Source: Mytilus edulis
Taxonomy: Eukaryota
Reading direction: 5' to 3'
DNA: 64,000 nucleotides
Assembly (NCBI RefSeq): GCF_963676685.1
Contig: NC_092347.1
Location: forward strand, 37,882,001-37,946,000
Shown here: positions 4,611 to 49,100 of the stretch, piece after piece
How the letters are laid out: the number at the start of each line of letters is the position of its first letter
Position numbering within the stretch: position 1 is the first letter of the stretch
Position numbers and translations under genes: made by a program
The notes under the pieces: model-generated
Database searches by the model: none
Seen by the model: the letters and a program-made list of their open reading frames with translations, nothing else
What the model was told of the DNA's origin: nothing

Positions 4611-7600
4611 AGAGGGACGAACGATACCAGAGAGACAGTCAAACTCATAAATCGAAATTAAACTGACAACGCCATGTCTAAAAATGAAAAAAAACAAGAC
4701 AAACTATAGTTCACATGACACAACATAGAAAACTAAAGAATAAGCAACACGAACCCCACAAAAAACTAGGGGTGATCTCAGGTGCTCCGGAAGGGTAAGC
4801 AGATTCTGCTCCACATGTGGCACCCGTCGTGTTGCTTATGTGATAACAAATCCGGTAAATAGTCTAATTCGGTAGGTCACATTCATGAAAAGGAAGGGGA
4901 TTGTAGTTACGACGTCAGGGACATATCCGATATTATTTGTGAAACGGTTATTCTATAACGGTCAACCAACTCGTGATGGCGTCCGTAAAATTTACGAAGG
5001 GATGATTTGAACTTTGAACTTCACCATTTGGAACTCTTGGTTTAATAGTTTTCTTGTGAGCAGCAACCCTCTATCAAGAAAATCATGATAGTAAATGCAA
5101 GCACGGGAATATCGTATCAATTGGGAGATATATACCCCGTATGCAGGTGCTGCTGGAATGTTGCTACTTAGAAATGGAAAGTTCACAATTGGAAAGCTGA
5201 AATCATCTCTTTTGTCGTAAAGTTTTGTTTTCAACCGACCCTCATTGTCAATTTCTAAATGTAAGTCAAGATATGAGGCTGACTTAACTGTATCTGTAGT
5301 AGTATCCTTTATCTCTTGTTCGATGGGATAGATGCGTTCAACATAGTCACCAAATTTTGTGAATTATTTAGTGAAAGAACATCATCTATATAGCGGAAAG
5401 TAGAGTTAAAGGATATTGCTAACTTCTTGTCCTTCTTGTCTTTCTTCCTAAGAAGTTCCTTTATGAAGTCAGCCTCAGAAACAAGTCGGCAAGAAGAGGG
5501 TCAATTTGTACCCATTGGAATACCGACAGTCTGTTGAAAAACACGCCCTCCGAACGTAACAAATATGTTGTCAATTATCTTGATAATGTCAGTTTCAGAG
5601 AATTTTTTGTTTGAATCAGAGTGATCCTTTACAAAGTAGGATTTATCCCTCCCTAAGACAAGATACTTGTATCTACGTTGGCCATTCTTTTTAATGGAAC
5701 AAAGCAATACCAACTCTTTCAATTTGTCTTTTAGTTTGGAATGTGGAATACTTGTGTAAAGTGTAGAAAAGTCAAATGTTTAATACTATTACACGATGAA
5801 AGAGAGTTAGATTGTATGTACTCTAAAAGATCTTTGAAATTTTTAAGTATCCACATCTGATTCACGCCACCTCTAGAATAGGCAGTTTCACAATAACTTT
5901 AAAGCCCGTCTTTGATTGCTGATAAAATAGATGTTAATAATTTAGAAAGAGGTTTTGTGGAGCACTTGGAAGACCCAGCAATATACCGTTGTTTGTAAGG
6001 ACACTTATGTAGTTAATGTATCTGTTACAGGCATTTTCTGAATTTAGGCATTTTGTTAAATGCCTGAAAATTTTAGGCATTCTCTAAAATGCCTGCAAGA
6101 TTCAGTCATTATACATAATGACTAATTTTTCTAGGCATTTTACAAAATGCCTGGAAAAATTGAAAGGCATTTTACAAAATGCCTGAAATTATTCTAAAAA
6201 ATGAAATATTAAAAATAAAAACAATTGAAAGCATTGAATAACAGAACAGTTTTATTTATGATAGTTATTACTGAATCAAAAAAGAAGAGTTTAAATAATC
6301 AAGAATAAATTTTACTAAATATTCCAAAAAACTCTACAATTATTTATCATTTCTCAAAATGTTTGTATTACAGAACTGTTACACAATATTTGTCCTGAAC
6401 TTTTGTAAATACATAATTGTTTGGCATTAAATCTGGTTTTAGCACTTCAACCATATTTGGAGAAACCGGAATCATCACACATTTAGCTCTTTCATTACCC
6501 TTATTGACAAAACACTTAACGTTCGACAGCATTGTATTTCACAATAAGCAATTGTCAATTGACCCCTTAAGGAGTTATTGCCCTTAACAGTCAATTTTAA
6601 ACATTTTTGTTTTTAATTTTTGTAATCTTTTACACAAATTAATTTAAACCTAGCCACAATTTGCAATAGGCTATCCTGATTGAAAAATGTATCCGATGAC
6701 ACTGCCAACCATATCTTTGCATCACACCAAAACACAGCCTTGTATGGCAAAACCCATACTTTAGAGGGGATTTTTTTTTCGATGTGGGTGTATAAAATTA
6801 AAATTCTCATTATTTTTAAATTGGAATATTAAATATTGTCATATGTAAGTGAAATGCAATACTAAATTTCTTCACGTTAATAACTCTACATTTTTTTTTT
6901 ATGTTCTGCAGTTGCAATTTTCTGTCCCTATCCAAAATACCTTCATTTCAATTGCAAGCGGCAGTTGAAATGTCTGTCCTATATCAGGATCAATCCTCTC
7001 CAGAAATAACCCAAATGAATTATAACCAAATTGTTCACGTCTAAAAAAAATTACATATTTGCGACTGGAAGCAAACAAAAACCATGTCAATTAAAAAAAA
7101 ATCTTTTTCTCTGCTTCTTATGTTTTATTTTAATTTACTGTTTTGAATCCAGAATTTCTAAAAAATTTATTGTAAATTTTGTTGTATTGACAGAACAACT
7201 TGTCCTGCCATTTTGACAAAATAATCAAATTCATTGAGTATGTACTTTATGTAGTTTCACTAAAAAGTACACATCATATGACATACAAACCTTCCCAGCT
7301 GGTTTTCGGAAAATAAATTAATTCTACCGAACCATTAGATATTTTCTTTGCAGTATATTTTGTTTTTGTCCACTTTTGTCAATGATAGCCTTCTTCTACA
7401 AATTGCCTGAAACTGAACAGCCAATTTGTTGAACTTGGCTTCCAAATTTCAGTCAATTTACAAAATGACCAGCTATTTTTAGTCATTTTGTATAATGCCT
7501 GTCAAGTTTAGGCATTTTATAAATTGCCTGAAAATTCAGTCATTTTACAAAATGCCTGAATTTAGAAAATGCCTGTAACATATCCAATACAGTGATGGAA

Positions 7601-7790
7601 GATTCAGTTCTTCATCATTGGTTGAAATTCCAAAGGAACATAGAACAGACCTATGATTATCCAGGATTTCCTCTTTGGTAAGTGTCGTGAGGGTATATGT
7701 TGAGTTTCCAATTGAATTGTCAATACCTAATTCGTTTATCAAGCAATTAATGTAATGAGTTTTACACACAAAAACGATGTTGTTTGGGGT
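4611..7790 (-). mobile_element. Penelope-like retroelement (probably Naiad-type, RT at C-terminus), 5'-truncated and decayed, interrupted at 6023-7580
   Basis: Minus-strand RT motifs: LPSLYWI..LHKCPYKQRYIAGS (split by the insertion), FQQTVGIPMGTN (5501-5722), FRYIDDV (about 5378-5399), KTKLYDKRDDFSFPIVNFPFLSSNIP..YGVYISQLIRY (4992-5234). No GIY-YIG seen after the RT thumb. Frameshifted. Confidence 0.8.
6023..7580. mobile_element. Non-autonomous TIR DNA transposon, Ginger-like (TGT...ACA termini, 4-bp TSD)
   Basis: Left end TGTTACAGGCATTTTCTGAATTTAGGCATTTTG matches the reverse complement of the right end CAAAATGCCTGAATTTAGAAAATGCCTGTAACA. TATC flanks both sides (6019-6022, 7581-7584). Excision rejoins the Penelope RT motif. 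Confidence 0.75.
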
Positions 7791-8260
7791 TGATCTGCTT
7801 GTTCAAAAAGTCATGTGCCAAGTCAGGAAAATGCCCATTGTTATTTTATAGTGTGTGTGTTACATTTTAATATTGTGTTTCTGTTGTGTCGTAGTTCTCC
7901 TATAATTATATATAATGTATTTCCCCCAGTTTTAGTTTGTAACACGGATTTGATTTTCTCTCAATCAATTTATGAATTTCGAAAAGCGACATACTGCTGT
8001 TACCTTTTGTTTATACAGTAAAATAGCTTAGTCAAGTATTTGCAAATGTATATGAATTATTAAATCGTTAGTATTACACTTTTATATATCAAGTGGTAAA
8101 AATAGCAACAAGAAAACTAAAATGAAGGTGTTTTTGCAATTTTAGATGTTAATGTTAACGTTCAACGTTAGTTTACTTACAATATCCATAGCATTTTAAT
8201 ACTAGATATATATGGAAACAACATATACTTATACACATTTGTACATTTTTAGGTAGGAGA

Positions 8261-8468
8261 ATGGATAAATCTCAACAGAATTATTTACGGATAGTGGCAG
8301 TTGTTTACGGGCCAGGACTACATGCAGTTCGAAGTTACTTTGACCGGTGCTTTCCACCAAATTTGCTAAACACCCAACTTTCAAGCGTGTTAAGAAAAAG
8401 ACTAGAGACGCTGAAACAGAAAAAAGTGATGAGTAACGCTCAATGGGATACCTTATTTCCTGCAAATG
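8261..8468 (+). CDS. Coding exon 1 of HEPN-STAND-ANK gene (HEPN N-terminal half)
   Basis: Acceptor TTTTTAG ends at 8252, ATG at 8261, MDKSQQNYLRIV...QWDTLFPAN, donor G|GTATGT after 8468 (phase 1). Confidence 0.8.
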
Positions 8469-11400
8469 GTATGTTTGAGTTTTTTTAATTTTTTTAAAAG
8501 AACTTTTTGAATTTTGGGTTTTCAATGCTTTCAAACATCGTAGTTGATTTGGCTTTAAAATAATTTTTATTTAACTCTGTCTTATATAGACGAAAGGCGC
8601 ATCTTACTGACGTATCCTGTGTTTTCGTATTTTTTATGTTTTGGCCATAAGTGTTGTCTGATTTTATTAGCATAACGTTGTATTCTCCCTTAACATCTTT
8701 TTAACTACAGTGTTTTTTGTTTTGTTGAATTCGTGGTATGGAACATTTAAATAATGTCAATTAAGACATGCACCTATCAAAATGTTATCTTGCCAAATTT
8801 AAAAAAAAAACTTTCCATCAGAGCTAAACTGTAACTATTAGATATATTGATAATTGCACTAAATAGTGGAGAATAATAAGCTTCCCTTCAAATAATTAAT
8901 CGTCTCTTCATTTTACAGGTATTGTATCTTCGTGCATGTTTGATGTTGCGATAATGACACTCTTACTGCGACATTTTCATATAAAAACAGAACCCAGCAG
9001 CGGATACGATGTGCTTCCACCTGATTTTGATCAAACACCTGCTGCCGATTTGGCGAGAATTAAGTTCTATAGAAACTTAATAGCTCACTCAAAAGACGGA
9101 ACAATTGATGAAGAATGTTATACGGAGGCGTGGAGACATTTATACAGTGTGAGTGAGGTTTTTTTCCATTATTGTAGTATACGGTGTTATTATTTACCAA
9201 ACAAATATGTCACATGCATGATCAATGATTAAGAATTATAATGCCTAAATATAAAGATTCTTTCTAGTCTGCAAAAGATTGATATCGTATCATTTAACGT
9301 TTAGAAATTCTAGTCTAACATGGTTTAGCATTACCTCAAAGTTATTGTGGAGTTTAAGCTTTCTCCGTAGTGTTACGTAGGCTACTATGCCTTTTCGTCG
9401 TCTTTCTTGTTTCGTCATTACTTTGCCAGTTTCTCTGTGACTGATGAGATTTTGAAGTCCCCTTTATTTTCGCGGCCTTGTGTTTTAGAATGTGTAAATT
9501 ATGCCTTTTTTCAATTAACAGGTAGTAGACAGATTAGGCGACGCTCATTTAAAACAAGAATGTGAACTATTAGGACGAGTAGATTTGAACATGGCATACA
9601 AGGCCCTGTGCGAAGAACTTTCAAGAAATATAGCAACACTAAGAGAACATGCATCTGCACTAGAATCTAGTCAAGACCAGCTGACCAGTGATTTGATAAA
9701 ACAGGAAATGATTTCAAGAATAAATGAGAATATTATTAAACAGTTAATAGAAGATATCCAAAGTAAAAATAAGGAAGCGGTGTGCATTTTGGAAACACGT
9801 ATGAACAATCTCAAAATACAACTAGATGGCATGTTAGACTGTCTCAATACACCGCAAAGTACTATTCCACGTAATATGAAAGGTAGATTGTGTTCTTTTA
9901 TAATTCATCTTACTTGACTATACAACAAGCTTAGTTTATGAAATTTGTACCTACAATCCATTGTTAAATGGCATGTACAAAATGTACCGCGTAACCCAAA
10001 TGCAGGTCAAACAGGGATTTGTGTACACAGGTGGTTGTAGCATCCCCGTATCAATTATTATAAATTGATCGAGAATTGTTTTGATTAGTTTCGTCTAAAT
10101 CCTATTCTAGTAATTGCATTTTTTGAACAGAGATCTGAATTAAATATACTAATAGGTAAATATTATCTGACTCGCAAGCTATTTGGCAGAAAACTGTTGT
10201 TTTCTTCGTATTAAATATAAACTTGACCAATGTACAACGTAGGTTTTACAGTAACGAATTGAATTTGTATGAACTATTTTCGACAATCGACTACGCAGGC
10301 GACAGTTAACTTATTAGCAGGGATAATAGACTACTGTAATCACTGGCCAGTCAACACTGATGTTGTCAGTTCGAACCCAGCTCGTGCAGTTGCACTCGAC
10401 TCCAATCTTACTTTATTAGGATCGTCAGTTTTCTTATCGAAGGTCGGTGATTTTCTCCTGGCACTTCGGGGCTTCCTCAACCAATAAAAACTAGCCGTCA
10501 CGAAATAGCCAAAAAGCGGTGCTAAAAAGTTGTGTTAAAACACAACAAATCAAAATCAGGTAAGGGAGGGGGTACCTTCAATAAAGCCATGAAAAGAAAA
10601 AAAAAGAAAAAAATAATAATAATAAAAGTAATCACATAATAATAACACAATATCAAAATCAATTTTCAAACAAAACAATATCATACAGAAACTCGATCTA
10701 TAATAGAATGCAATCGATAAAATACGTGACTGTATACTATCATTAAAAAACAAGCTTTATTCAATTCCTTACAGCAGAATGTTGTTATTATGATAGTATA
10801 CTACATCATAAAAAATCTAAGTTCTAAAAGTGGAATGTAAACGTAGATTTATTGTTTGTAAGATGTCCAGGATAGTGTATATTTCGTGGAGAAAAACAAT
10901 CGTTGCATAGTTGTGCGTAATGATACGATAACGGTAATTTCAACCTCGTGCTATGGAAAATACAATTGTTTTGAATATTTATAATTCACTTTATTTCAGC
11001 AAAAATAGTGCGTCAGATAAAAACATGGATTGATGACGAGAAGAAGTATGTTATTATCGATGCTGCAATGGATGCGCTAGATCTACTTAAGAAACATCCT
11101 TTTTTGACAGTTGCTGGAAACGCAGGTTGTGGAAAAACTGCTCTCATAAGACATTTAGCCCTACATTTTATGTCGCAAGGCTATGAAATAGTTCCAGTTA
11201 TAGAGCCAAAAACCATTGTAGAATACCATGATGAAACACGAAAACAAGTGTTTGTTTTGGATGATGTTTGTGGGGTTCATACAGTAGATCAACAGAAACG
11301 CGGGGCTTGGTTAGACTATGGACAGGTTATCCAAGATTGTGTGTTGCAATCTGGTGCTTTACTGCTAGTGTCAGTTAGGCTTTCTATATTGAATAGCGAG

Positions 11401-14400
11401 TCGTTACACGATTTAAAAGTTTTATCTCAAAATGTTATCAATCTAAAAGACAAAAAGTACGCATTGTCATTAAAAACTAGACAAGACATTTTTCGATCGT
11501 ATTTCAAAAAGGGTTATGAGGAACTAGGGATAACTGACAAATCTTTAAACTCTCACGATGCATTTCCTTTATTATGTCGATTTTCTTCTAGATCATTATA
11601 CATAGTCGAAGATAACGATAAAGAAAATTTAGATTCGAATTCAGAGAACATTATCAATGATTTGGATACATTCTTTCAAACTCCTATTCAAGTAATTGAG
11701 TGCGAAATAAAATCCTTGAGAATCAACTCGCCAGTTAGCTATTGTGTTCTAGTACTGTGCTTACTATTTAACGGCAGGCTACCAAAGCAGGATCTCTTTC
11801 ACTCAAATAGATATAAAAAGCTTTTGAAAGATTGTTATAGTGTGTGTGGTCTGAATAGAGGTACTTCAATCAAGACCGTCTATGACATATTTCAAAGTCT
11901 GAAAGATGTTTATCTAAAAGAAGTTGATGGTACATTTATGTTCATTCATGACATAATAATGGATATTGTTTCAGTTTGCTTTGGGAAACACTCCCCAAAT
12001 ATTATTCTCAAACATGCCAATATAGAGGTAATAATTGAAAGAGTTCAATTAAAAAAGAATACTGAAACAATCGGGTATAAAATTTTTATCCCAAAAGATC
12101 ATCATTTTAATTTTTTTCAAAGACTTTACACGGAAATTAAAATGGGAAATGTATGGCAGATTTTCAATCACTGCCAGTTAGAAATTCAATGGGTTCAAAG
12201 AGCATTTACAAATTATTTAGAAAAAAAGAGTAACGATGAATTACGTTCAATTTTTTTTCTAGTTGAAGACAAAAAAGGAGATCGTAATCAAAAACTGCGT
12301 TTGAAACTTATGGACATCTGGGCTCAAACTCTTGATATAAACCCTGTAAATTTAGAATTTCAGTCATATCTTGACTTTATTGTAAATACAGCCTTCCACT
12401 GTCTCCTAGGAAAGGGTCTTTTCGAAATTATAGAGTTATTAGAGAGAAGAGTATGTAGCGATGTGTACAATGAATTGTTTAAAGCTGATAGTGCGTGCAC
12501 ATTAATTGCAATTTTAGGAGGAGATCTAAATATATACTCTTGGATATTGAACGTTCAAAAGAAAAGAACATCATGGCGAAATTTAAGGTATAAATTACTT
12601 CAAAATACATTTTTAATTCAAGATTTCCAATGGGCGGTTGTGACAGGTCGAACAAATATTGTAGAATGTCTTCTGCATTACGATATTTGCATCACCTGTT
12701 TGAATGAATCGATAACTTCAGACGACCTGCTTCACATAATTGGAAAACTTTTCGGATTTTCAGTTTATAAAGAAAGAGTAAAATTGTTCTTGGCGAAGTT
12801 TATACAAAAAAATATATTAAATCTAAATTGTGGAGTTGAATGGTCTGACTTCAATCTTGATAACTTTATAATGTATTATAGGAAAGTAGGATACATGCTC
12901 TTCTTCACCAAAGATGACAATTTCAATAAGTTAATATATAAAAAATTTAATTCTGATGTTCAGCCGATAGTTATCAAATTATTTCAGAATAGAGTAGAGT
13001 TTCAGTGTCCTCAGTTCCCACTACCAAAAACTATTGGTGATGAGTTTCAAGGTCGCATGAAAGTAAGTCCAACATGTATTGCATTAGCAGCAATCCTTGG
13101 TCATGAAGCCGTTGTTAATCTGTTATTACTGAACGGTTCTAATCCAAACAAAATCAGTATCCCATCGAATAATGTGGCCAAATCACGTACTGCTTTACCA
13201 GTAGTTTACGCAGCTATGTATGGGAGATTATCTATTGTACGAAATCTGCTCCAGAATGGTGCCAATATTGAATCGACTGGCCCAATGGGGTGCACGTTAT
13301 TGATATTTGCGTCTAGTTATGGTCATTATGACTTAGCCAAATTCTTACTGGATAAACATGTTCATATAAATGCTACAAACATGTTTCAAAACACTGCTTT
13401 ATTGTATGGATCTAAAAAGGGACACATAAATATTGTTAACCTTCTTCTAGAAAATGGAGCAATTACAAATACTGCATGCTTCAAATCATCAACGCCATTG
13501 ATGGAAGCTTCAAGCAGGGGACACCAAGAAATCGTCGATAATTTATTGTGTCATAATGCATCTGTAAATGCTTGTGATAATGAAAATAGGACATCATTAA
13601 TAAAAGCCGCCGAAAATGGGCATTGCAAAATCGTCAAAAGACTTTTAGAAAGACAAGCTGATATTTATATTCGGAGTCACGAAAACGAAACAGCACTGAT
13701 GGTTGCTAGTAGGAAGGGTCATTTAAAAGTTGTTTCGATTTTGATGGAGAATATATATGCCAATTTACACAAGTATTATATCACAAAGGAGAAAGAACTT
13801 TCGACGCAAGAGAATGCCTACAGACGTGCTTTTGCGAGATTGCCATACGCATTTTGTTCCCCTCCGATTACTGAAGTGAGCGAGGAAATTAATCAAGCAT
13901 TCTCGAAAGCTTATCGATGTGGACATATTGATATAATGACATTTTTACTTGACAATGGCGCAAACGTACGTCAAGTAAAATCACGTACATCTCGTAGCTT
14001 GTTAAATGATGCAGTTTTTAGAGGTAAATATAGAATCGTTAACTTACTTCTAAAAAATGGAGCACAAGTACAAAAAAGAGCAAACTCTGGTATCCCACCG
14101 CTAATGTTAGCTTCTTTTAAAGGACACACAGATATTGTAAAACTTTTGTTGACATATGGATCTAATATCAACTCAACATCTGAACATATACCAATTCTTT
14201 GCACATTAAAAGAGGGCATTTGGATACGACAAAATAGTAACGAATCAAAGTTTAATGACAAAAACGGTACTGCCTTGATCTGTGCGATCCAAAAAGGCGC
14301 TTCTTTGAAATTGATAGAAACATTATTACATGAAAAACACATCAATATTAACTCGCAAACACACATGGGAAGGACTGCTTTAATGATTGCTTGTGGATCA

Positions 14401-14700
14401 TGTCGTGCGAAAGTCGTAAATTTGCTATTGCACTATAAACCTGATTTGAACATCAGGTCCGACGTTGGTGCAACTGCTCTAGATATTGCATCAGTACGAG
14501 AATTTAGAAATGAAAATATAATAAAAGATTTACTGAGAAACGGAGCTATGTATTGTAGAGATATGATTCCATTTCAAGAAGGTTATCAAGTATGTCCTGT
14601 TCGTTCTTCAATTTCACAAATCGAATTTGATATAAAATGGATCATTTCACGAATTATTATAATACTTGGACTATTAACACTTCTACCTTTATGCGAATAG
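8261..14700 (+). CDS. HEPN (DZIP3-like) - coiled coil - nSTAND3-type NTPase - ankyrin-repeat protein, about 1499 aa; NLR/STAND-like putative immune receptor
   Basis: Coding exons 8261-8468, 8919-9148, 9522-9882, 11000-14700. All introns are GT-AG with matching phases (1,0,1) and the exons total 4500 nt. Motifs: HEPN FDVAIMTLLLR..DLARIKFYRNLIAH; Walker A GNAGCGKT (11116-11139); Walker B VFVLDD; FPLLC and FIHDII STAND motifs; about 13 ankyrin repeats (about 13070-14550). Confidence 0.88.
8919..9148 (+). CDS. Coding exon 2 (HEPN catalytic half, RNLIAH at 9071-9088)
   Basis: TTTTACAG acceptor, phase-1 entry restores G-I-V-S-S-C-M-F-D, donor AGT|GTGAGT. Confidence 0.85.
9522..9882 (+). CDS. Coding exon 3 (end of HEPN plus coiled coil)
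   Basis: AACAG acceptor, VVDRLGDAHLKQECELL followed by heptad-rich L/I/E/K/Q sequence, donor G|GTAGAT. Confidence 0.8.
10305..10558 (+). mobile_element. tRNA-derived SINE with V-SINE-like core in intron 3
   Basis: B-box-like AGTTCGAACCC (about 10368), V-domain-like GATTTTCTCCTGGCACTTCGGGGCTTCCTC (about 10449), and an AAATCA-repeat tail. The 5' boundary is approximate. Confidence 0.6.
11000..14700 (+). CDS. Coding exon 4: STAND NTPase, helical domains, ankyrin array and hydrophobic tail in one 3.7-kb exon
   Basis: TTTCAG acceptor ends at 10999, phase-1 entry in frame with the 1230-codon ORF, stop TAG at 14698-14700. Confidence 0.92.
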
Positions 14701-15099
14701 ACACAATTATGAACAATACACATCAGTCAAAGATATTTTCGTTTCAACCATCTGCGATGTCATTTCTTTTAAATCCGACGCATATCCGTAATCAATCACA
14801 TTTTTTAGTTCCAACTAAGGAATTAATAAATTATGAAAAATGTGTAACGTTGTAAGCATGACAACTTAAATATTATTTAGAAGAAGAACAGACAGATGGC
14901 AAATGTTCTAAGAACAGTGTTTGGCATTTATCAGAAAAGATAACTAACAAGCCAGCTAACAACTTGTTAATACTATATATATATATATAGTATATATGAT
15001 TAAAAACGGTTGTATTCATCGATCTAGCCTGTTGCGATTGCTGAACAAATAAAATTACTTAGTTTTTATACGGCATACTTTTTCTGTTAATGTTATAAG

Positions 15100-15140
15100 A
15101 TCACTGAAGAGACATATATTGTCGAAATGCGCATCTGGTG
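15100..15140 (+). ncRNA. Minimal type I hammerhead ribozyme (Penelope/retrozyme type)
   Basis: ATCA-CTGAAGA-GACA(TATAT)TGTC-GAAA-TGCGCA-TC-TGGT: complete CUGANGA/GAAA/UH core, 4-bp stem II, palindromic stem III, short stem I ATCA/TGGT. Confidence 0.65.
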
Positions 15141-16299
15141 CAACAAAATTGGTACCGTTGATTTTATTCTCTCATATAGATTTGACCAAATAATGTTTTC
15201 ATCTTTTATAAAATTTTATCTCTGCTGTTAGATTGTCAGGTGAATAAGACGCAAAATGTAAAGCTCTGGATGTTTGTTCGGGTTTGGTTCTATATTTTGT
15301 TGTTCTTTTTTAACTATAATTATTGTGAATTAGGTAGTTGATAATTGGACAACAAAAAAGTCACGTTTCATCATAAATCCTAGTTATGTGTTATCTACCT
15401 GTGTCAATTTTATAGAAGAAAGTTTTGGTTGTAAAGTTGATCCGATGATGGTACATGTCTGAATTGGTATCATGCATCACATATATAGTGTACCAAAAAA
15501 TATAATCGTTTCAAATCTAGTCTAACAATATATCTGTGATCATTTTGAGCAAACACGTGTTACTATTATTTATGATTCAGCTTAGTGTTTAAACTATAGA
15601 ATTTTCAAAACAGTTCATAATTTGGAAAAAAAGATATATTGATGATCTACCACCATATGATTTTCGAAGGGTATATTTTAATTTTGATATGTATGAATCA
15701 TAAATTGTCAACATAACATAATCGTTTAATTGAACATGATGACCGACTCTGTGAGTTTTGCAATTTAAATGACTTAAATGATGAATGTCACTCTCTGTTT
15801 AAAAACTTTAAATGTGTTTTATTTCTAAAATGAAAGCAAAATGCTTTTACCCTGAAATTTTTATGAATAGCATCAAACTGTGAGGTATCGGAACCAAATG
15901 TCAAGCAAACATTTTGGAAAATTGTTCTGTCTTTTATAAATTATGTATGTGCCTGTAAAGTCAGGAGCCTGTAATTTAGTAGTTGTCGTTTATTGTTGAA
16001 TATCCAATTGGTTTTTCAGTCATTGTTTTATACATAAATTGGGGGTTAATCAATTTAACAAAACAAAGGTTTTTTGGTTTTTATTGTCTATTTTGGGTCC
16101 TATAACAGCGTTGTTTTGATGGAACGATTATAATTACAAAGCAGTGTGTTAATTTAATTTTTTTATCCGTCGTTTATATGGATTTTTTTGTTGTTGTTAT
16201 TTTTTTGTTTTTTTGTTATTGTAATATTAAAAATTACACTGGTCTTCAATCGTTAACAAATTGATCGAAATATTTCCTTGAAAAAAAAATGAAAACAAC

Positions 16300-18315: not shown

Positions 18316-21300
18316 TAGAATAGAATATTTTTATTTCCCAAATTAAAGGGCATAAAATCAGATACAATTGATTTACATAATTGGTAACAACAACAATAAT
18401 AGAGGCATATACATATATATTTGGAATATAAGCATTGGTCAGAACCAACCAAAAAACACATATATATTGTGAATAAAAGAATAATAAAATTACATTATAC
18501 ATGTATATGTATTTATTCTCAAATTATTTACTTGACTTAGTGTCAGTGTTCATACCTGATCTCCTTAATTCAAAACAGTCACAAATATAACAGCCCAGTT
18601 TTTCCATAAAGAGTAACATTTTCTTGGGTCAAGAGCCATAAAAATTTAGAAGATTTATTTAAATTTATAAAATTATAACAATTGTTAGAAATGTCTTGAA
18701 AAAAATTGTCCCTTTGAATATCATAAAGAGGGCATTCTAATAAAAAATGAAGCTCATCTTCAACTTTACCAAGTGAGCAATTAGAACAAAGACGCTCAGA
18801 TCTTTCTATATGCTTTTTTGAATATCTGTCTGTCTCAATTTTTAAAGAGTGAGCACTTATTCTTAATTTACAAATTGACTGTCTTTTTTTGAAGTCCTGC
18901 AATTCTAAATATTTTTCTTTTTTAAAACAATTTTTTATAGAAAAATAAGTACCAAGCTTCCCTTTTTCGGAGTTAATTGTTTGATACTTCAGTTTATTCC
19001 AAAATGTGAAATAACTTTTACATAGTTTTTTTTAACATACTGACATAAAGAACCAATTGATCGGTCAAAATTTGGTAATTCAATCTCTCTCTGAATATAA
19101 TCTATACTAGAATACCATGTATTTACATTAGAGCTATGTAACTGTTTACAACATATAAATGCATCAAATAATAATCCTTCTTTCAAATGTTCCAGTCTAT
19201 GACAATATTTTAACATTGATAAAATTATAGTAAAATACATAGAAAATCTACCAAGCTCTGACATTACAGCTATATTACTTGACTTTCTGTTTACACCAAG
19301 AATATATTTCATAAATTTGGTATGAGCTTTTTCAGAAGAATCCTGACCAAAGACTTTTTCTAATATATAATCATTATCTTTTTTACAAGCAGCTGAATCC
19401 GTTCTAAACATTCCCCATATTTCACTGCCATATAATAGTATGGGTTTAATTGTATGATCATAAAGATGTAAAAAAGTGGCAATACTAGGGTTAGATGATG
19501 ACAAGCATCTCTGTAGCTTAAAACAAGCTTTTAAAGATTTGTTGTATAATTCATCTTTACACTGCTTAAATATACCACTAGATGTAAATGTGATTCCAAG
19601 ATATCTATATAATTTTGCACTTTCAATCTCTTTACCTCCAAAATGTAAACAGCATTTTTAAAAATTTTCCTGGCTTGTTAAAAATTATACTTTTTGTCTT
19701 TTTTAAATTTACATCAAAACACCATTCTAAACAATATTCATGTAACATATTAATTCTCTTTTGCAAGCCTTCCTGTGTTTCTGAAAAAATTACTACATCA
19801 TCAGCATACATAAGACAGTCTACTCTACGGTTATTAATATTTACTGGATCAGGACAAGATAAAAACTTGTCAGGTAGATCATTAATAAATATTTTTAAAC
19901 ATGGAGTCATTTCATTATCAATTTTAACACAGAGGTCACTTTTATTATACATATCTTTAATGATAGAATAAAACTTTCCAGTAATATTGTTTGTTAAAAG
20001 CTTATATCTGATACCCTCATGGATCACGTTATCAAAAGCCTGTTTAAAATCTACAAAACAGACAAATAGTTTACTTTTTACTTATATATTTATCGATAAT
20101 GGTTTTTAAAACAAAAACATGATCAGATGGTCTACATTTTTTTGAAAATCCAATTTGACATGGATTAATCACTGATTCTTTTACCAAAAATTTATCTAGT
20201 CTGTTATTCAAAACAGAGTTAAATAATTTACCAACACAAGAGTTAATGGCAATGCCACGATAATTATCTGTTTTACTTGGATCACCAGACTTAAAAACAG
20301 CAGATAAATAGACTGATGACCACTGCATTGGATAAATACCAGATGAAAAAACATGATTAAACAGTTTCTGAATTAAAGGATCTAGAACTAAACTTCCTGC
20401 CTTTAGCATCTCATTAGGTATACCATCCAGACCTGAGGCTTTACCAATTTTGAGTTTAGATATTGATTCAAATATTTCTTTAGTAGAGAATCTAATTCAC
20501 AAAAAGTTTTATTTTTTTCCATATTTTCTATTTTAGAATTAATTTCTTTAATTCTTGTCTCACTAATTGAAGGAGATTTATTCAAATCTGAAAAATGATT
20601 AAACCAGACTTCTGGTTCTACTGACCTTCTTTTACTATCATCTGTAGACTCCTTTAAAGAATTAATAAGTTTCCAGTATTGTTTTGGATCAGAATCTCTT
20701 AAATTGTCAAGGCTATTCAGGATGGACTGTTTAAATGTGCGCATTTTATATTTACGCAATTTATTATACTCTCTGTAGCATTTATAATATGAACCTCTGA
20801 CAATAGGATCATACGGAAATTTTGACAATAATTCTCCTTTAGATACTAGAATTTTCCTCTTTACACCTAAATCAGAATCAAACCATTTACAATTAGGTTT
20901 TCTTTTTTTAGATGATTTATGGCGAAAAATATTTGCCTTTGTAGCAGCAACATTTATTATGTTTAAAAAATCAGGAACTGCTCTCTCTGAATCTTCATTG
21001 CCATATTCATGATTCATAAAATTATTTAAAAGAGATTTGCAAACAGGGTGGCAATTAAAGTGCATCTTGAAATTGACTTGTTGATGATTTTGTCCACTTA
21101 TAACCACCCGGAAATGCATTCATTTTAAATTTATTAATAGTTAAATGTGAAGAATAAGTTGCTAAAATTCCAAAAGACAACTTACAATGACAATCTGAAA
21201 AATTTTGGATGAAATCTGATATTTTGAAAGATAGAATTTTAGGTAAAAGTGCCTCTGAGACAATAACATAATTATGGCAAGCCGTTCTCATCAAAACTAT

Positions 21301-23279
21301 GTTTAAACCCTTTTCTCGAAAAAAAATACACACTGAGATTTAAAAACCTAAAATAACACACTGAGAAATCGAAATTACACACTGAGATTTAAAAAAAATA
21401 AAAAACACACACTGAGAATTCAAAATTACACACTGAGATTTTAAAAAGACACACTGAGATGAAATAAATTGAAAAACACACACTGAGAATTGTTAATTAC
21501 ACACTGAGATTTCAAAAATACACATTGAGATTAATATGCAAATTACTAATGAATATTCATGAGATGAATAATTCAACAGATTAATATCTTGATCTCAAGA
21601 ACACTTGTCATTATAATGAAATGTGATTCCTTCAACCAACATTCGTAATAAATTTCAAGACTTAACATCGCTCATATTCATAAGTTTGTTGCCTATAATT
21701 CAGATCATTACTACCAGTGTATCGGGATGATTTTTTTTAACTTAAAACCGTGGGTCCCTTTTCAAAAGTCTTCCAACTGTCTCCCTGATTTCGCTAGTTA
21801 ATCTTTTATATTTTTGTTACGTTTATATGCTATAATAGACACTTTCAGTAAAAATTTCACTGCATTCTTTTGCAGATTGTTCCAATGTTTTCTTATAATT
21901 TTAGTAAAGTTTTTCACCATTTGGTTATATTTTGTAATAAGAGTAAGTGGGTATTTTTCTAGTTCTTGTATTTTTAAATTTTTTTTTATATTAATAATTT
22001 GGAACCAAATCGAAGGACTAACGAGTTATGTCCCCTTGTTGTTTTAAGCTTGTAATAGATTCAGATTAAGTATGCTAATTAGATATGTGCGCATAAAAAG
22101 TGCGCACAAATCTCAGTGTGTAATTTTAAATTCTCAGTGTGTAATTTTAAATTCTCAGTGTGTAATTTCAAATTCTCAGTGTGTGTTTTCGGTTTATTTA
22201 TTCTCAGTGTGTCTTTTTTAAATCTCAGTGTGTAATTTTTAATTCTCAGTGTGTAATTTTCAATTCTCAGTGTGTAATTTTCAATTCTCAGTGTGCGTTT
22301 TTCATTTTTGTAATCTCAGTGCGTCTTTATGAAATCTCAGTGTGTAATTTTTAATTCTCAGTGTGTAATTTTCAATTCTCAGTGTGCGTTTTGAAGTTTT
22401 TAAATCTCAGTGTGCTTTGTTGTAATTCTCAGTGTGTAAATTTTTCGAAAAATGGTTTAAACATAGTTTTGACGAGAACGGCTTGCCATACATAATCTAC
22501 AACACTCGATCCTGTGGGTTTATGGCATGTAAATTTACCATACAAATCTCCAAATACTCTTCCATTTCAAATTCTCATTTTTGTAGATATACATAAATCT
22601 AATAACTGTTTACCTCTAACATCAACCTTACTATCATAACTATGTCTTACATCTTGAATAGTATCACAATCATAATCATTATATATATAGGTAAATGAGT
22701 ATCATAAACATCATTTTGTATAAAATCTGGCCCTGATCCTGACCGAGCATTCAAATCACCACATAATATAATATCTCCTAAATGTTTATAAGTGCATGTC
22801 ATATCCCTTTCAATAATATCTAATACATCATCATCAGACTGATGTAAATAACTTGACATACTTGGAATTATATAGGCTAGACACAGATATATATCATTTG
22901 TTAGATTAAAAAAGTTCTTATTCAGTTTAATCCACTGATAATCTTTACTGGTATTTTGCAAAATGTTTATGCCTGGACGGATAATATTCTTTATTAGTAT
23001 ACCAAGGCCCCCATAAAATCTTGAATTAGAGGACTGTACTCTACAAACTGGGGAAAAATTGTATCCCTCAACACTAATAGGGGTGTTATATCCCAAATGT
23101 GTTTCTGTCAATAGTATAATATCATAATGAATGATCTGTTTTAGAAATGAGGGGTCATGTAATTTATTGTAGGATTAAGAAATTAAGCCCCCAACATTCC
23201 AAACACAAAAAGATAAATTAGAAAATAGAATATTCTTGTGCTTATTCATTACTTCAATTTAATGTTTAAGAAATAGTGT
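18316..23279 (-). mobile_element. Decayed non-LTR retrotransposon ORF2 (APE endonuclease, RT, C-terminal CCHC), RTE-X/L2-like
   Basis: ATG at about 23249 (CVWNVGGL); APE motifs TETHL, GGLGILIK, CGDLNARSG, SVVDY; RT motifs NYRGIAINSCVGKLF and CLMYADD; C-terminal LRISAHSLKIET..CSNC..EDELHFLLECP; 3' tail AATAAAAATATTCTATTCTA ending near 18316. Broken into 7 or more ORFs, and the RT GVRQG segment is deleted. Confidence 0.88.
21273..22490. mobile_element. Non-autonomous IS3EU-type TIR element inside the LINE endonuclease
   Basis: TIR TATGGCAAGCCGTTCTCATCAAAACTATGTTTAAACC versus right end GGTTTAAACATAGTTTTGACGAGAACGGCTTGCCATA. 6-bp TSD CATAAT (21267-21272, 22491-22496). Subterminal CACACTGAGA repeats in opposite orientation on the two arms. 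Excision restores SVVDYVIV. Confidence 0.85.
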
Positions 23280-43100: not shown

Positions 43101-46100
43101 TTTCAAGTATACTTTTGTCAAATATTTTCAAACTCTTGTTATTTCTATTAAATTTTGTATAATACTATATTTAAAAAAAAATCATTAATGAAAATGTTAT
43201 AAATTGAATTTCTAGACCAAAAAATCTGTTTATGAACAAATAAAAGCTCTAATGTCAAAATATGTTTCAATTTTATAAAAGGACACCTTTGAAGCAGCCT
43301 CCATCTTTGTCTATAGAAATGATCACAACAGAATCACAAGTTTCTGAACATTCATTCAAACTCAACAGTAAGTACAATCTAAGCATAGAATTAATTGAGG
43401 ATGTCAATTGTTACTCATATGATTGGAATAAAGATCAGTGTAGAATAAACCTTCATATTCTGGATTTTTTATACGACCGCAAAAATTGAAAATTTTGTGG
43501 TCGTATATTGGTATCACATTGGCGTCGTCATTGTTGTCGTCCGAATACTTTTAGTTTTCACACTCTAACTTTAGTAAAAGTGAATGGAAATCTATGAAAT
43601 TTTTCAAACAAGGTTTATGACCACAAAAGGAAGGTTGGGATTGATTTTGGGAGTTTTGGTCCCAACATTTTAGGAATTAGGGGCCAAAAAGGGCCCAAAT
43701 AAGCATTTTCTTGGTTTTTCGCACTATAACTTTAGTATAAGTAAATAGAAATCAATGAAATTTAAACACAAGGTTTATGACCACAAAAGGAAGGTTGGGA
43801 TTGATTTTGGGAGTTGAGGTCTGAACAGTTTAGGAATAAGGGGCCTAAAAGGGGTCCAAATAAGCATTTTGTTTGGTTTTCGCACCATAACTTTAGTATA
43901 AGTAAATAGAAATCTATGAAATTTAAACACAAGAAAAATGACCATAAAAGGAAGGTTGGGATTGATTTTGGGAGTTTTGGTCCCAACAGTTTAGGAATAA
44001 GGGGCCCAAAGGGTCCAAAATTAAACTTTGTTTGATTTCATCAAAAAATGAATAATTGGGGTTCTTTAAAATGCTGAATCTAACTGTGTATGTAGATTCT
44101 TAATTTTTGGTCCCGTTTTCAAATTGGTCTACATTAAGGTCCAAAGGTCCAAAATTTAACTTAGTTCATTGAATCCTTGGGGTTCATTGATATGCTGAAT
44201 CTAAAAATGAACTTAGATTTTTGATTATTGGCCCAGTTTCCAAGTTGGTCCAAATCGGGGTCCAAAATTAAACTTTGTTTGATTTTATCAAAAATTGATT
44301 AAATGGGGTTCTTTGATATGCCAAATCTAACTGAGTATGTAGATTCTTAATTTTTGGTCCCGTTTTCAAATTGGTCTACATTAAAGTCCAAAGGGTCCAA
44401 AATTAAACTAAGTTTGTTTTTAACAAAAATTGAATTCTTGGGCTTCTTTGATATGCTGAATCTAATCATGTACTTAGATTTTTGATTATAGGCCCAGTTT
44501 TCAAGTTGGTCCAAATCAGGATCCAAAATTATTATATTAAGTATTGTGCAATAGCGAGAAATTTTAAATTGCACAGTATTCAGCAATAGCAAAAAATCTT
44601 CAATTGCACAGTATTGTGCAATAGCAAGAAATTTTCAATTGCACAGTATTGCACAATAGCAAGAAATCTTCAATTGCACAGTATTGTGCAATAGCAAGTA
44701 TTTTCAATTGCACAGTATTGCGCAATAGCAAGAAATTTTCAATTGAGGTTATCTTTCTTTGTCCAGAATAGTAGTTGAATCAACTTAAATCATTGTTTTA
44801 TACAATATACAATGTATACCGTATATTCCCGAATTTAAAGCGCATCGTTTTATAAGCCGCACGGCCGTTTTTAGGGGGGAAGATTGTTTTTGTCCTTACA
44901 TAAAACGCACCTGAATATTAAGCGCACCCTGAAGAAAACGTACATTTATTCTACTGACCTTATAGTGTCATGAATATTTCCTCCTTTTGCAACTCACACC
45001 GTAATTTGTTTCATTTCTATTTTCAGATTGGTGAGAAAGTTGAGAGTATTTTTTAATATATTTATTTGTGTCATATTAAAATAAAAAATCTTAATAAAAT
45101 AATTATACTTTTCTCATTGTTTTAATTATGCCAGTTTCGTTTGTTGTTTTTTGTCAAGAATGGCCATGTGTTGACAGCTTGGGTGTCCATTGAACCTTGT
45201 TGTTTTGATTAAAATTAGTATGGTATTGATTGCTTCTTTATTGTTTGAATTGGCATTATGGATTTTAATTAATCTTAAAAATGTATGCATGAAAGGTCAC
45301 CCAAGCCATAAAACTGCCATTGTTTACCTTGATTATGACCTACTTACCTGTACCCAAGTGTGAAAACTGTTCACCGATAAGTCAGAAAAAAATTAATTAA
45401 ATCAATCTTAAGAATTTTATTGTTGTCTATAAAATAAAAGTTGAAGTTCTGGAAGTAACAAACATTTTTCAATTTTAATTTGGATAAATACCACATACAA
45501 AACCATTTACTTTTTACAAGTCATTGTCTATTTTTAAATGAAAGTGATATGAGCCATGAAAAGGGGAATTCAAAAAAGATGGCAATAAATAAATGTCTTA
45601 ACAGATTAAATTATAAAAATTAGTATTTTTTTTTTTTTATTTAAACATCCAATAATATTTCGTAAAGATATTTCATTTTGAAACACAATAAAACGACAAA
45701 CAGTTACTCCTCAATATTATATCCTGTATGGTACCTCTTTTCAAACACGATTATCTCTCTTTGTTTATGAAACACTTTCAAGTGTCGATTTAAGCACATG
45801 CATCGTCATTAAAAGAAACTTGGAATATTGTCAAGACACACAATGACTTTCTTTATTATTTCATTAGAAAATTTTATATTAAAACACATTAAATCAACTA
45901 ACAACTACGTATTTATGATAAATACACAATTAATATCCTGTATGGACACAGTTATCTTTCTTTGTTTATGAAATGCACACTAACACATGGTTATCAACTT
46001 CCTGTAAACCAACAATGATTGAATGAAATAAAAAACAAACGATAAAGTAAATATATTTATTTATTCATAACAAAATATGCCACATTAACAATTTATCAAG

Positions 46101-49100
46101 TCACTGCAAGCACTTGACAATCTGACTGTCTCCAGAAAAAAATCCAGATATTTTTTTTTCACGGTCGTCCTGAAAACAGAAAATAATACATACATAACAC
46201 GCACCTGAGTATAACACGCAGGGACAAAGACAGAGAAAAAAACCTGCGGCTTATTTAACGATTTTTACGGTACTCACTTTTACTACCAACTGATAAATTA
46301 AAACAATCTTTACCATTCAGTGATAACAAGCACTTTTTTTTACATTTTAATATTTTATGATGTATTTAAATGAGTATAGTTATTGTTGCAAACTCCATTA
46401 GAAATTTGAATTGAGATCAGTTTTGGAATAAGGGAAAGGGGGATGTGAAAAAAATATGGGGGGGGGGTCAATTTTTCTCATTTCAGATTTCATAAATAAA
46501 AAGAAAATTTCTTCAAACATTTTTTGAGAGGATTAATATTCAACAGCATAGTGAATTGCTCAAAGGCAAAACAAAAATTTTAAGTTCAATAGACCACATT
46601 CATTTTGTGTCAGAAACCTATGCTGTGTCAACTATTTAATCACAATCCAAATTTAGAGCTGAATCCAGCTTGAATGTTGTGTCCATACTAACTTGCCCCA
46701 ACTGTTCAGGGTTCAACCTCTGCGGTCTAATAAAGCTGCGCCCTGCGGAGCATCTGGTTTAATATGAAAGAATTACTGCATGTACTGTGGTAAATTAAAA
46801 AAAGAAGATATTTCAAGTTTAAAATTAAAAAATAAATAGTTAAAAAAAAGGTAGAAATTTACTTCAGTATGAAAACATGTCACCGTCTCCGTCTCTACAA
46901 AGAAAAACATTAAATATAAAAAAGAAGATGTGGTATGATTGCCAATGAGACAACTATACACAAAAGACCAAAATGACACAGACATTAAAACAACTATAGG
47001 TCACCGTACGGCCTTCAACAATGAGCAAAGCCCATTCCGCATAGTCAGCTATAATAGGCCCCGATAGGACAATGTAAAACAATTCAAACAAGAAAACTAA
47101 CGGCCTTATTTCTGTAAAAAAATGAACGAAAAACAAATATTTAACACATAAACAAACAACAACCACTGAATTACAGGCTCCTGACTTGGGACAGGCACAT
47201 ACATAAATAATGTGGTGGGGTTAAACATGTTATAAAACCCCATTCTTTACAATCTGTTCTTCAATGTCTTTAAAGAAATTCATCATTGATTCCAAATATA
47301 CCTTTCCTAGATATAAGATATACAGACATATCTATTACACCTCTCAGATGCAATCATATATAGTCAACCAAATTGTTTCTGCAAAAATTAGCCACTAAAA
47401 AATAACACAAGTATGAATCATTACATATACGAAAATAAAATATAAAATATATGATGAAAATAAAATCAAAGTAATAAGTCAGACAGAAGTTGACTAGAAA
47501 TGGCTAAACACAAAATAGAAATATCCATGAAAAAAAAGCATGAAAACTCCTGCATAAGAAACCTTGGTATTGATCAATCTTATTTATTTGCAGGACCAGA
47601 CGTACATGTTGGCAGTGAACAGTCTCCTCAAGAAGATACCAGAACAGATGTATTTAGAAAAATAAAATCATCAGACAAATCTACTTCTAGATACCAAATT
47701 CATGATGACAGGTAAAAACTTTTGGTCTTTACCCTGATAATAAAGTATTATCAATTTTATAGTCACCACATTTTTTTAAATATGATAGAAAATCAAGGAC
47801 ATAATATACATGTATTAGTAAATTTGGACTTGTTTGTTAAAAGAATTGCATAGGAACCTATCAATGGTTATGAAATGTATACATATAGAGAGTACCTTAA
47901 ACAATCAATAACTAAAAGATTAAACCAGGTGCTTTAAATGCATTGTGTTAATTAAAATACTACACAGAAACGACAATTTAGTCGAAACATCTCTCATAAT
48001 TAGCAGAAAAACTTGAAAACTAATACTTGAGATTTAAAATCTTGTTTAAAAAAATGTAGTTATGTCAGGAGTTCTTGAAAAGTTCTTTTTACAGCTCAGC
48101 TTACAGGATTGGTAATTAAATACATAAAAGTCACATAAAAAAGGAGACTGCACAGCAGACCACCAATAGGCAACAAATCGTGAAAAAAGCAAACTACTGA
48201 GAACAACATACAATCTAGATATCCAAATGAAATCAAAAGACAATTGATATATGTATGAAATATGTAGAATTTCATTCTTTGATATTACTCAATACCTGTA
48301 TTTTTATCTCTATCAGTTGTCTCAGTTTCAGTACTTTCTTTTCTATATCCAACAGATATTACCTATTTCTAAGCACCGTATGACTTTTGTCTCTTTTCAA
48401 ATAAGTTAAAAATTTAACCATTTGTAATAGTTTAGAAAATCTATGTCTTCTATATAACAGTACTAGTTATGCATTAAGGATTGAAATTCATTGATTTAAT
48501 TTATGATATATTGGGTAGTACTTGGATTTAATGTATTGAATTTCAGTGATGAAGAAGTATCCTTTAAGACAGCTGAAGGGAAAGAAGAAAAAGGAAAAGA
48601 CAAGAATCTAGATGAAGAGAAAGAAGATACTCCTCCAAAATTGAAAATGATTCGTACAATATCAAGTGAAGTCACTTCCACAGGATATCAAGGCAGCATT
48701 GAAAGTTTACAATCATCAGCTCATCCAGGAGACACTACAGTGCAGCCTGGAGACACTACTGCTCAGCCTGGAGACACTACTGCTCAGCCTGGAGATACTG
48801 ATGATCATACAAGAGACACTTCTGTCCAGGTAGGAGACACTATTGTTCAGCATGCAGAAAATATATCAACATATTCAGTCGACACTAATCTTCATCCAGC
48901 AGGAGATGCTTCAAGTCATCCAAATGATTCCATGCAAGACGTAGACAAAACTCAATCATATGATACTGAAAAGTATTTAAAAATTGAAGAAAATACTAAG
49001 GATAATTCTGAAATTTTGACAACTGAAAAAGATGTATTTGCACACAATGAGTCTACTGTTGACAAAGATAAGATTGCTGATGTTGATAATAAAAATTTGC

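Follow-up and report, generated by a model that had tools for sequence, protein, structure and literature searches.

What is encoded on the forward strand of Mytilus edulis contig NC_092347.1 between positions 8,261 and 14,700 of the 64,000-nt stretch analysed here (contig positions 37,882,001 to 37,946,000; hereafter the window, numbered from its first nucleotide)? An initial annotation made from the letters had read four exons at this locus as a one-protein immune receptor, joining an N-terminal HEPN ribonuclease (RNase), a STAND ATPase and an array of ankyrin repeats. We find that these exons form a real, intact, protein-coding gene which, judged by sequence comparison, is one member of a family that has expanded in its lineage to several hundred HEPN_DZIP3/nSTAND3/ankyrin genes in this genome. 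With moderate confidence, we regard its product as a cytosolic innate-immune sensor of the type of NLRs (nucleotide-binding, leucine-rich-repeat receptors) or bacterial Avs proteins, probably tethered to a membrane, in which a ligand would gate the HEPN RNase.

The four exons lie on the + strand at 8261..8468, 8919..9148, 9522..9882 and 11000..14700. Exon 1 carries the start ATG and the first HEPN_DZIP3 helix, and exon 2 the core of that domain; exon 3 probably contributes the last HEPN helix, as suggested by the homologue P0002 described below, followed by a long single helix and, at its end, a conserved IPRN linker. Exon 4 holds the STAND NTPase, a helical region, the ankyrin repeats, a hydrophobic tail and the stop codon (14698-14700). 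Read off the sequence, the joined length of 208+230+361+3701 = 4500 nt corresponds to 1499 amino acids plus the stop, in agreement with the product of about 1499 residues originally proposed. All exon borders are canonical GT-AG (slashes mark the border): exon 1 ends at the donor ATG/GTATGT, exon 2 is entered through the acceptor TTTTACAG after a T-rich tract and left through AGT/GTGAGT, exon 3 lies between the acceptor TTAACAG and the donor AAG/GTAGAT, and exon 4 follows the acceptor TTATTTCAG; the intron phases of 1, 0 and 1 are compatible. The reading frame of exon 4 stays open for 1232 codons in DNA of ∼33% G+C, which is far beyond chance, and the remaining open reading frames (ORFs) of ≥130 aa across the window reach only 131 to 308 aa.

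Homologous proteins place the junctions at the same sites. Using exon 4 residues 1-500 as the query, we retrieved P0002 (1494 aa; NCBI model LOC127734835, from Mytilus californianus), whose set of Pfam families is that of the window gene, HEPN_DZIP3 included. A tblastn alignment of this protein to the window gave four blocks, with breaks exactly at the exon borders of our gene model, and the HEPN match of P0002 runs unbroken over both junctions (profile positions 3-131, 110.6 bits). Exon 1 shares 86% identity with residues 1-70 of P0002, and exons 2 to 4 are 89-95% identical to P0008, a Mytilus trossulus model (95% for exon 2). In addition, an intact copy that is 99% identical (P0001) is present in an independent assembly, and homologues in two other Mytilus species (61-95% identity) have all kept the frame, the motif and the tail. 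Since most matches in a genome-wide HEPN scan start around profile position 36-40 and stop around 113-115, and since paralogue reading frames likewise open shortly before the NTPase match, both intron positions can be considered features of the family. The window copy is presumably transcribed.

Pfam and other searches were made on single exons, one at a time, and in this exon-by-exon form they recovered the three families that the initial annotation had anticipated, namely, a DZIP3-like HEPN, nSTAND3 and ankyrin. Exon 1 matches positions 3-34 of the HEPN_DZIP3 profile (PF18738), collinear with the match of exon 2 to positions 39-112, which scores 63.5 bits (Pfam cut-off 27). The predicted catalytic Rx4H motif, read from the sequence as R-N-L-I-A-H, is located at 9071..9088 on the + strand; it is intact and shows the typical Asn following the Arg, so that the HEPN assignment held up in both profile and motif. 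P0002 differs from the window at one residue within Rx4H and at three over a 20-residue stretch, and P0008 is identical. With exon 2 alone as query, no PDB sequence was matched. A query with the HEPN region of the M. californianus protein yielded three proteins, a number set by the word index of the search and carrying no information on taxonomic spread.

Exon 3 matches no Pfam family over the cut-off. AlphaFold predicts it to form one helix spanning residues 2-109 (∼108 residues; pLDDT 90), a model which fits a coiled coil or a stalk. Of the coiled coil named in the initial annotation, this single helix is the part that stood; the heptad pattern is weak. A complex prediction for two exon 3 helices scored 0.02, a value which bears neither way on dimerisation. 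The same HEPN-helix-nSTAND3-ankyrin layout is seen in P0010, a Mytilus edulis paralogue of 1046 aa.

The switch of the proposed receptor is found where exon 4 begins. An nSTAND3 P-loop domain (PF20720) at 11047..11508 (+) spans profile positions 1-154 of 155, with 88.8 bits against a Pfam cut-off of 27.2. As had been claimed, Walker A (GNAGCGKT, 11116..11139, +) and Walker B (VFVLDD, 11248..11265, +) can both be read intact from the sequence. We assign an NBD-HD-WHD module (nucleotide-binding, helical and winged-helix domains) to 11002..12105 (+) from a structural model and a structure search; within it, an IHD motif, MHD-like by its position after the winged-helix hairpin, lies at 11944..11952 (+). 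In family alignments (25-32 members), G42, G44, K45, D87 and R126 (sensor-1) are invariant, and D88, FPLLC and I-H-D are invariant or nearly so. By position, FPLLC and IHD would be equivalent to the GLPL and MHD motifs of NB-ARC domains, respectively.

The model itself, computed by AlphaFold for exon 4 residues 1-700 from aligned sequences (24 paralogue frames plus 7 homologues from databases; pLDDT 81.6, pTM 0.74), supports a STAND fold of the NBD-HD-WHD type, in line with the STAND NTPase and helical domains named in the initial annotation. In a Foldseek search against the PDB, the best match was EfAvs5; the other top matches included a wheat resistosome, NOD2, SAMD9, NLRP2, a STAND-TPR protein, NRC2, ZAR1, Dark, CED-4 and Apaf-1. 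Over model residues 1-368, VIA-align gave Z scores of 15.3 for NLRC4 (291 residues aligned), 14.9 for NLRP3, 14.0 for MalT, 13.9 for NRC2, 13.7 for NOD2, 12.2 for SAMD9 and 11.2 for Apaf-1; generic AAA+ proteins mostly align fewer residues (∼185-230), largely within residues ∼1-230, at Z scores of 11-12. The NACHT profile PF05729 reaches 14.2 bits, below its cut-off of 26.7, and the Pfam results contain no leucine-rich repeats (LRRs), ankyrin families being the only repeat families in the protein. We therefore describe the product as NLR-like and not as a strict NLR.

Downstream of this module lies the presumed sensor, 13 ankyrin repeats with two insertions at 13060..14571 (+), assigned from Pfam and the translation. 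Counting by eye in the translation gives 13, the number originally put forward as approximate, and Pfam 'Ank' reports 10 stretches. The last 20 residues of the protein (14638..14697, +) make up a hydrophobic tail, which hydropathy marks as a probable tail anchor: it contains the maximum 19-residue hydropathy window of the whole protein (2.28). The hydropathy maximum is likewise C-terminal in P0001 to P0007, down to 35% identity, and in L002, the closest paralogue, located on contig 8; no such tail was seen in P0009, in P0010 or in those six of the more distant paralogues that have the end of their frame within the retrieved sequence. The window gene and L002 also share an insertion of 17-20 residues, rich in D/E/N/S, directly after FPLLC (window 11560-11640), and this acidic insertion is absent from the 23 other aligned paralogues. 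The conserved tail, which is new here, marks a small subclade whose members are probably tail-anchored.

How singular is this gene? We searched the genome (1.37 Gb, 14 large contigs) and found at least 651 first-look candidate loci for PF18738, of which all 150 that were scored exceed the cut-off; the scored matches are a lower bound, since exon 2 of the window gene itself (63.5 bits) lies under the lowest of their scores. With the NTPase-helical part of exon 4 as query, at least 495 candidate nSTAND3 loci were detected, and the 76 scored loci besides the window's own have E values from 1e-221 to 2e-38. For at least 24 of these 76, a scored HEPN_DZIP3 match is found on the same strand no more than 11 kb upstream, a lower bound for which coordinates were cross-checked by hand. 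All 24 sampled paralogues combine nSTAND3 with ankyrins; across the sampled frames and proteins, nSTAND3 is present in 32/32 and ankyrins in 31/32, the one without being the window's own entry, which ends before its ankyrin repeats. With hundreds of loci, the gene is thus not singular, as the paralogue count suggested in the initial annotation now makes plain. L002 is 60% identical to the window gene and all other paralogues are 26-32% identical. Between the window gene and L002, the ratio of nonsynonymous to synonymous substitution rates (dN/dS) is 0.29, which indicates constraint, a rough estimate because the dS of 1.14 is near saturation. As to genomic arrangement, HEPN_DZIP3/nSTAND3 matches occur in tandem arrays on contigs 3, 6, 10, 13 and 14 (for example, contig 6 at 5.8-6.3 Mb, contig 3 at 6.4-7.1 Mb, contig 13 at 9.85-9.96 Mb, contig 10 at 79.6-79.9 Mb and contig 14 at 43.2-43.4 Mb), and the window gene is a solitary copy within its 64 kb.

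The HEPN-STAND design is known from computational work on bivalves, corals and other invertebrates (2013, 2021, 2022). Anantharaman et al. (2013; PMC3710099) described fusions of the DZIP3/hRUL138 HEPN to ankyrin, NACHT, CARD, Death and LRR domains, with expansions in Nematostella and oyster and HEPN-STAND proteins in bacteria too, and proposed by analogy with RNase L that HEPN combined with NACHT/Death could degrade cellular or viral RNA. Emery et al. (2021; PMC8260672) counted 17-83 HEPN_DZIP3-NACHT proteins per anthozoan species, the TIAMMAt study found HEPN-NLRs in nine invertebrate taxa (PMC8662601), and Takeuchi et al. (2022; PMC9646362) counted over 50 genes of the HEPN_DZIP3-NACHT type in the pearl oyster and suggested degradation of RNA from viruses and transposable elements (TEs). 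The mussel gene shares with these invertebrate HEPN-NLRs (DZIP3/hRUL138-like HEPN, NACHT and LRR, TPR or WD40) an N-terminal PF18738 domain with Rx4H, the order effector-STAND-repeat, a strong expansion within particular lineages of sessile marine animals and the proposal, modelled on RNase L, of an RNase that acts against viruses. It differs from them in having nSTAND3 instead of NACHT, ankyrin instead of LRR, a helix of ∼100 residues between HEPN and the ATPase and, in its subclade, the hydrophobic tail. In the literature search, no DZIP3-type HEPN-STAND protein came up that had been studied functionally; the initial annotation had known of no functional characterisation of this architecture in molluscs, and we likewise found no such paper. 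Of the broader interpretation offered there, our results support the anatomy together with the logic of effector, switch and sensor; the design was already published, and the gene is one of hundreds.

Four further systems help to place the protein. Bacterial Avs5 (AVAST type 5; SIR2 - nSTAND3 - TPR/Sel1/PPR) has the same tripartite layout, with a SIR2 NADase as effector where the mussel protein has HEPN. It is reported to bear Pfam nSTAND3 (PF20720; PMC12931631) and to be activated through filament formation (PMC11897194). The link to Avs rests on this shared Pfam family (PMC12931631) and one Foldseek match: the VIA alignment of our model to the Avs5 filament was poor (root-mean-square deviation 22), none of the Avs models in PADLOC matches the mussel protein (what PADLOC returned was PDC-S73, a candidate defence protein of bacteria, with an E value of 1e-13, plus weak P-loop matches), and a search of PDB sequences with the NTPase family profile gave generic P-loop matches only and no Avs5 chain. 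There is a precedent among animals for a STAND-type protein that carries an RNase, since human SAMD9 is a characterised STAND-type antiviral RNase that cleaves tRNA-Phe (PMC10246899). SAMD9 is also a structural neighbour of our model (Z 12.2 over 283 residues); SAMD9 and SAMD9L differ in lacking an ankyrin sensor and in being present in single or double copy, compared with hundreds in the mussel. The nuclease of SAMD9 is an AlbA-type domain and not a HEPN. RNase L and Ire1 (KEN domain) resemble the mussel protein in combining ankyrins with a HEPN-superfamily RNase activated by dimerisation (PMC3710099, Table 1). They differ in their reversed order, with N-terminal ankyrins, in a switch formed by a pseudokinase or kinase in place of a STAND ATPase, in the ligand 2-5A and in a KEN family separate from the DZIP3 family. 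Human DZIP3/hRUL138, after which PF18738 is named, has the HEPN family in common with the mussel gene; it is an E3 ligase with TPR and RING (PMC3710099, Table 1) and has neither a STAND ATPase nor an ankyrin array.

Taken together with these systems, the anatomy suggests how the protein would work. At rest, an ADP-bound ATPase would keep the protein closed. Binding of a putative pathogen-derived or danger ligand by the ankyrin domain would permit nucleotide exchange, upon which the NBD-HD-WHD modules would assemble as a ring or a filament; such an assembly would pair the N-terminal HEPN domains, whose paired Rx4H motifs would constitute the active RNase. Cleavage of host or viral RNA might then stop translation in the infected cell.

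Several points weigh against this reading. We found no report of RNA cleavage by any DZIP3-type HEPN domain in the literature searched, and for some HEPN domains, that of sacsin among them, only binding of RNA or nucleotides is reported. In P0010, the HEPN motif is K-N-F-I-V-S-H, in which K replaces R and one additional residue is present; catalysis is thus not universal in the family, and some members may be dead as catalysts. The hydrophobic segment is interrupted by R and K in two of the tails, for which the call of a membrane anchor is weaker and short of certain, and the constraint estimate carries the near-saturated dS mentioned above.

The main rival to an active RNase starts from the same points and holds that the HEPN domain is a non-catalytic module for RNA binding or protein docking, so that the STAND oligomer would signal via recruited partners, as death-fold NLRs do, or would itself sense RNA. 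We consider this unlikely. Human DZIP3/hRUL138, the namesake of the family, is an RNA-binding E3 ligase, recent papers on the sacsin HEPN report RNA binding, and the missing arginine of P0010 points in the same direction. The TIAMMAt study, too, suggested that sensing of RNA in the cytoplasm may be what HEPN-NLRs do (PMC8662601). Against this, the window copy retains the full R-N-x3-H, its typical Asn included, the M. californianus and M. trossulus relatives have likewise kept the motif, and in the pearl oyster 194 of 202 domains carry Rx4-6H (PMC9646362), a degree of conservation that is hard to reconcile with a non-catalytic domain.

Accepting an active HEPN-STAND device, one may still ask against what it is directed. 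Targets other than pathogens, such as transposon transcripts, self/non-self recognition among mussels or transmissible cancer cells, are in our estimate quite improbable as its main object. The pearl-oyster paper did propose degradation of TE RNA along with viral RNA (PMC9646362), infectious tumour cells have been raised as a trigger of bivalve expansions (eLife 2021; PMC8195603), and the mussel genome is repeat-rich; yet the sequence has nothing that separates such targets from viral ones, and ankyrin sensors are usually protein binders. More improbable again is that the locus is an intact but silent or decaying copy that arose recently, in a family of fast birth and death, and has no function of its own. 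Rapid turnover of the family and in-frame stops in several scored paralogue matches would accord with such a fate. However, all four exons and every splice site are intact, the paralogue comparison at dS ∼1.1 gives a dN/dS well below one (0.29), and the relatives at 61-95% identity in the two other Mytilus species have preserved frame, motif and tail. A ligand-gated HEPN RNase in an innate-immune sensor stays our preferred reading of the gene.

For the tail-bearing proteins, a more specific and more tentative proposal can be made. On this reading, which we regard as possible and hardly firmer, the window gene, its chromosome-8 paralogue, the M. californianus and M. trossulus co-orthologues and two more distant metagenome proteins would form one tail-anchored subclade. 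Its members might, speculatively, be STAND sensors that hold their RNase head on the cytosolic face of the endoplasmic reticulum (ER) or the mitochondrial outer membrane. From there, it is conceivable, if doubtful, that they would watch the replication sites of RNA viruses and cut RNA locally, somewhat as if MAVS and Ire1/RNase L had been combined in one protein. In the literature, we came across no STAND RNase described as anchored to a membrane in this way.

The surroundings of the gene are those of repeat-rich DNA. Intron 3 contains a SINE-like interspersed repeat (SINE, short interspersed nuclear element) at 10330..10558, a non-protein feature recognised by genome search and given without strand. 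This repeat of ∼225 bp, with a tRNA-like B-box stretch, has 2443 first-look candidates in the genome, the scored copies being 83-87% identical and spread over many contigs; it is probably a SINE and was called by neither ARAGORN nor Rfam. Rfam and tRNA scans of 7500-15500 detected no hammerhead or tRNA in the introns, and a repeat scan of the locus returned nothing structured. A scan for AATAAA was uninformative given the AT-rich DNA. Farther downstream, on the - strand at 18989..23111, lie fragments of a non-LTR (long terminal repeat) retrotransposon of the LINE type (long interspersed nuclear element), with RVT_1 at 19635-20027 and an Exo_endo_phos endonuclease at 22650-23111; this element is decayed, as its pieces are confined to separate short ORFs. 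The remark in the initial annotation that neighbouring TEs are decayed is thereby confirmed for this LINE at ∼19-23 kb, that is, only in part. Upstream of the gene, positions 7500-7563 form an almost perfect hairpin, whose arms are 29 nt long and whose loop has 2 nt and which is probably part of a repeat; it scores 30.3 bits with the mir-384 model, far under the gathering score of 72. Elsewhere in the window, positions 46001-52000 show a strong positive AT skew (0.13-0.18) distinct from the rest, and a 308-aa ORF at 48503-49429 has no Pfam match.

Bivalves possess neither adaptive immunity nor a vertebrate-style interferon system and yet tolerate heavy viral loads, and their genomes contain HEPN-STAND genes by the hundred. 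As a genomic observation, the gene described here is one further member of a published class. As an intact and compact copy that has a canonical catalytic motif, a tail that sets it apart and clear orthologues in sister species, it offers a practical candidate for testing whether an animal HEPN-STAND protein is a ligand-gated RNase, and such testing would connect bacterial Avs-type defence, SAMD9 and RNase L.

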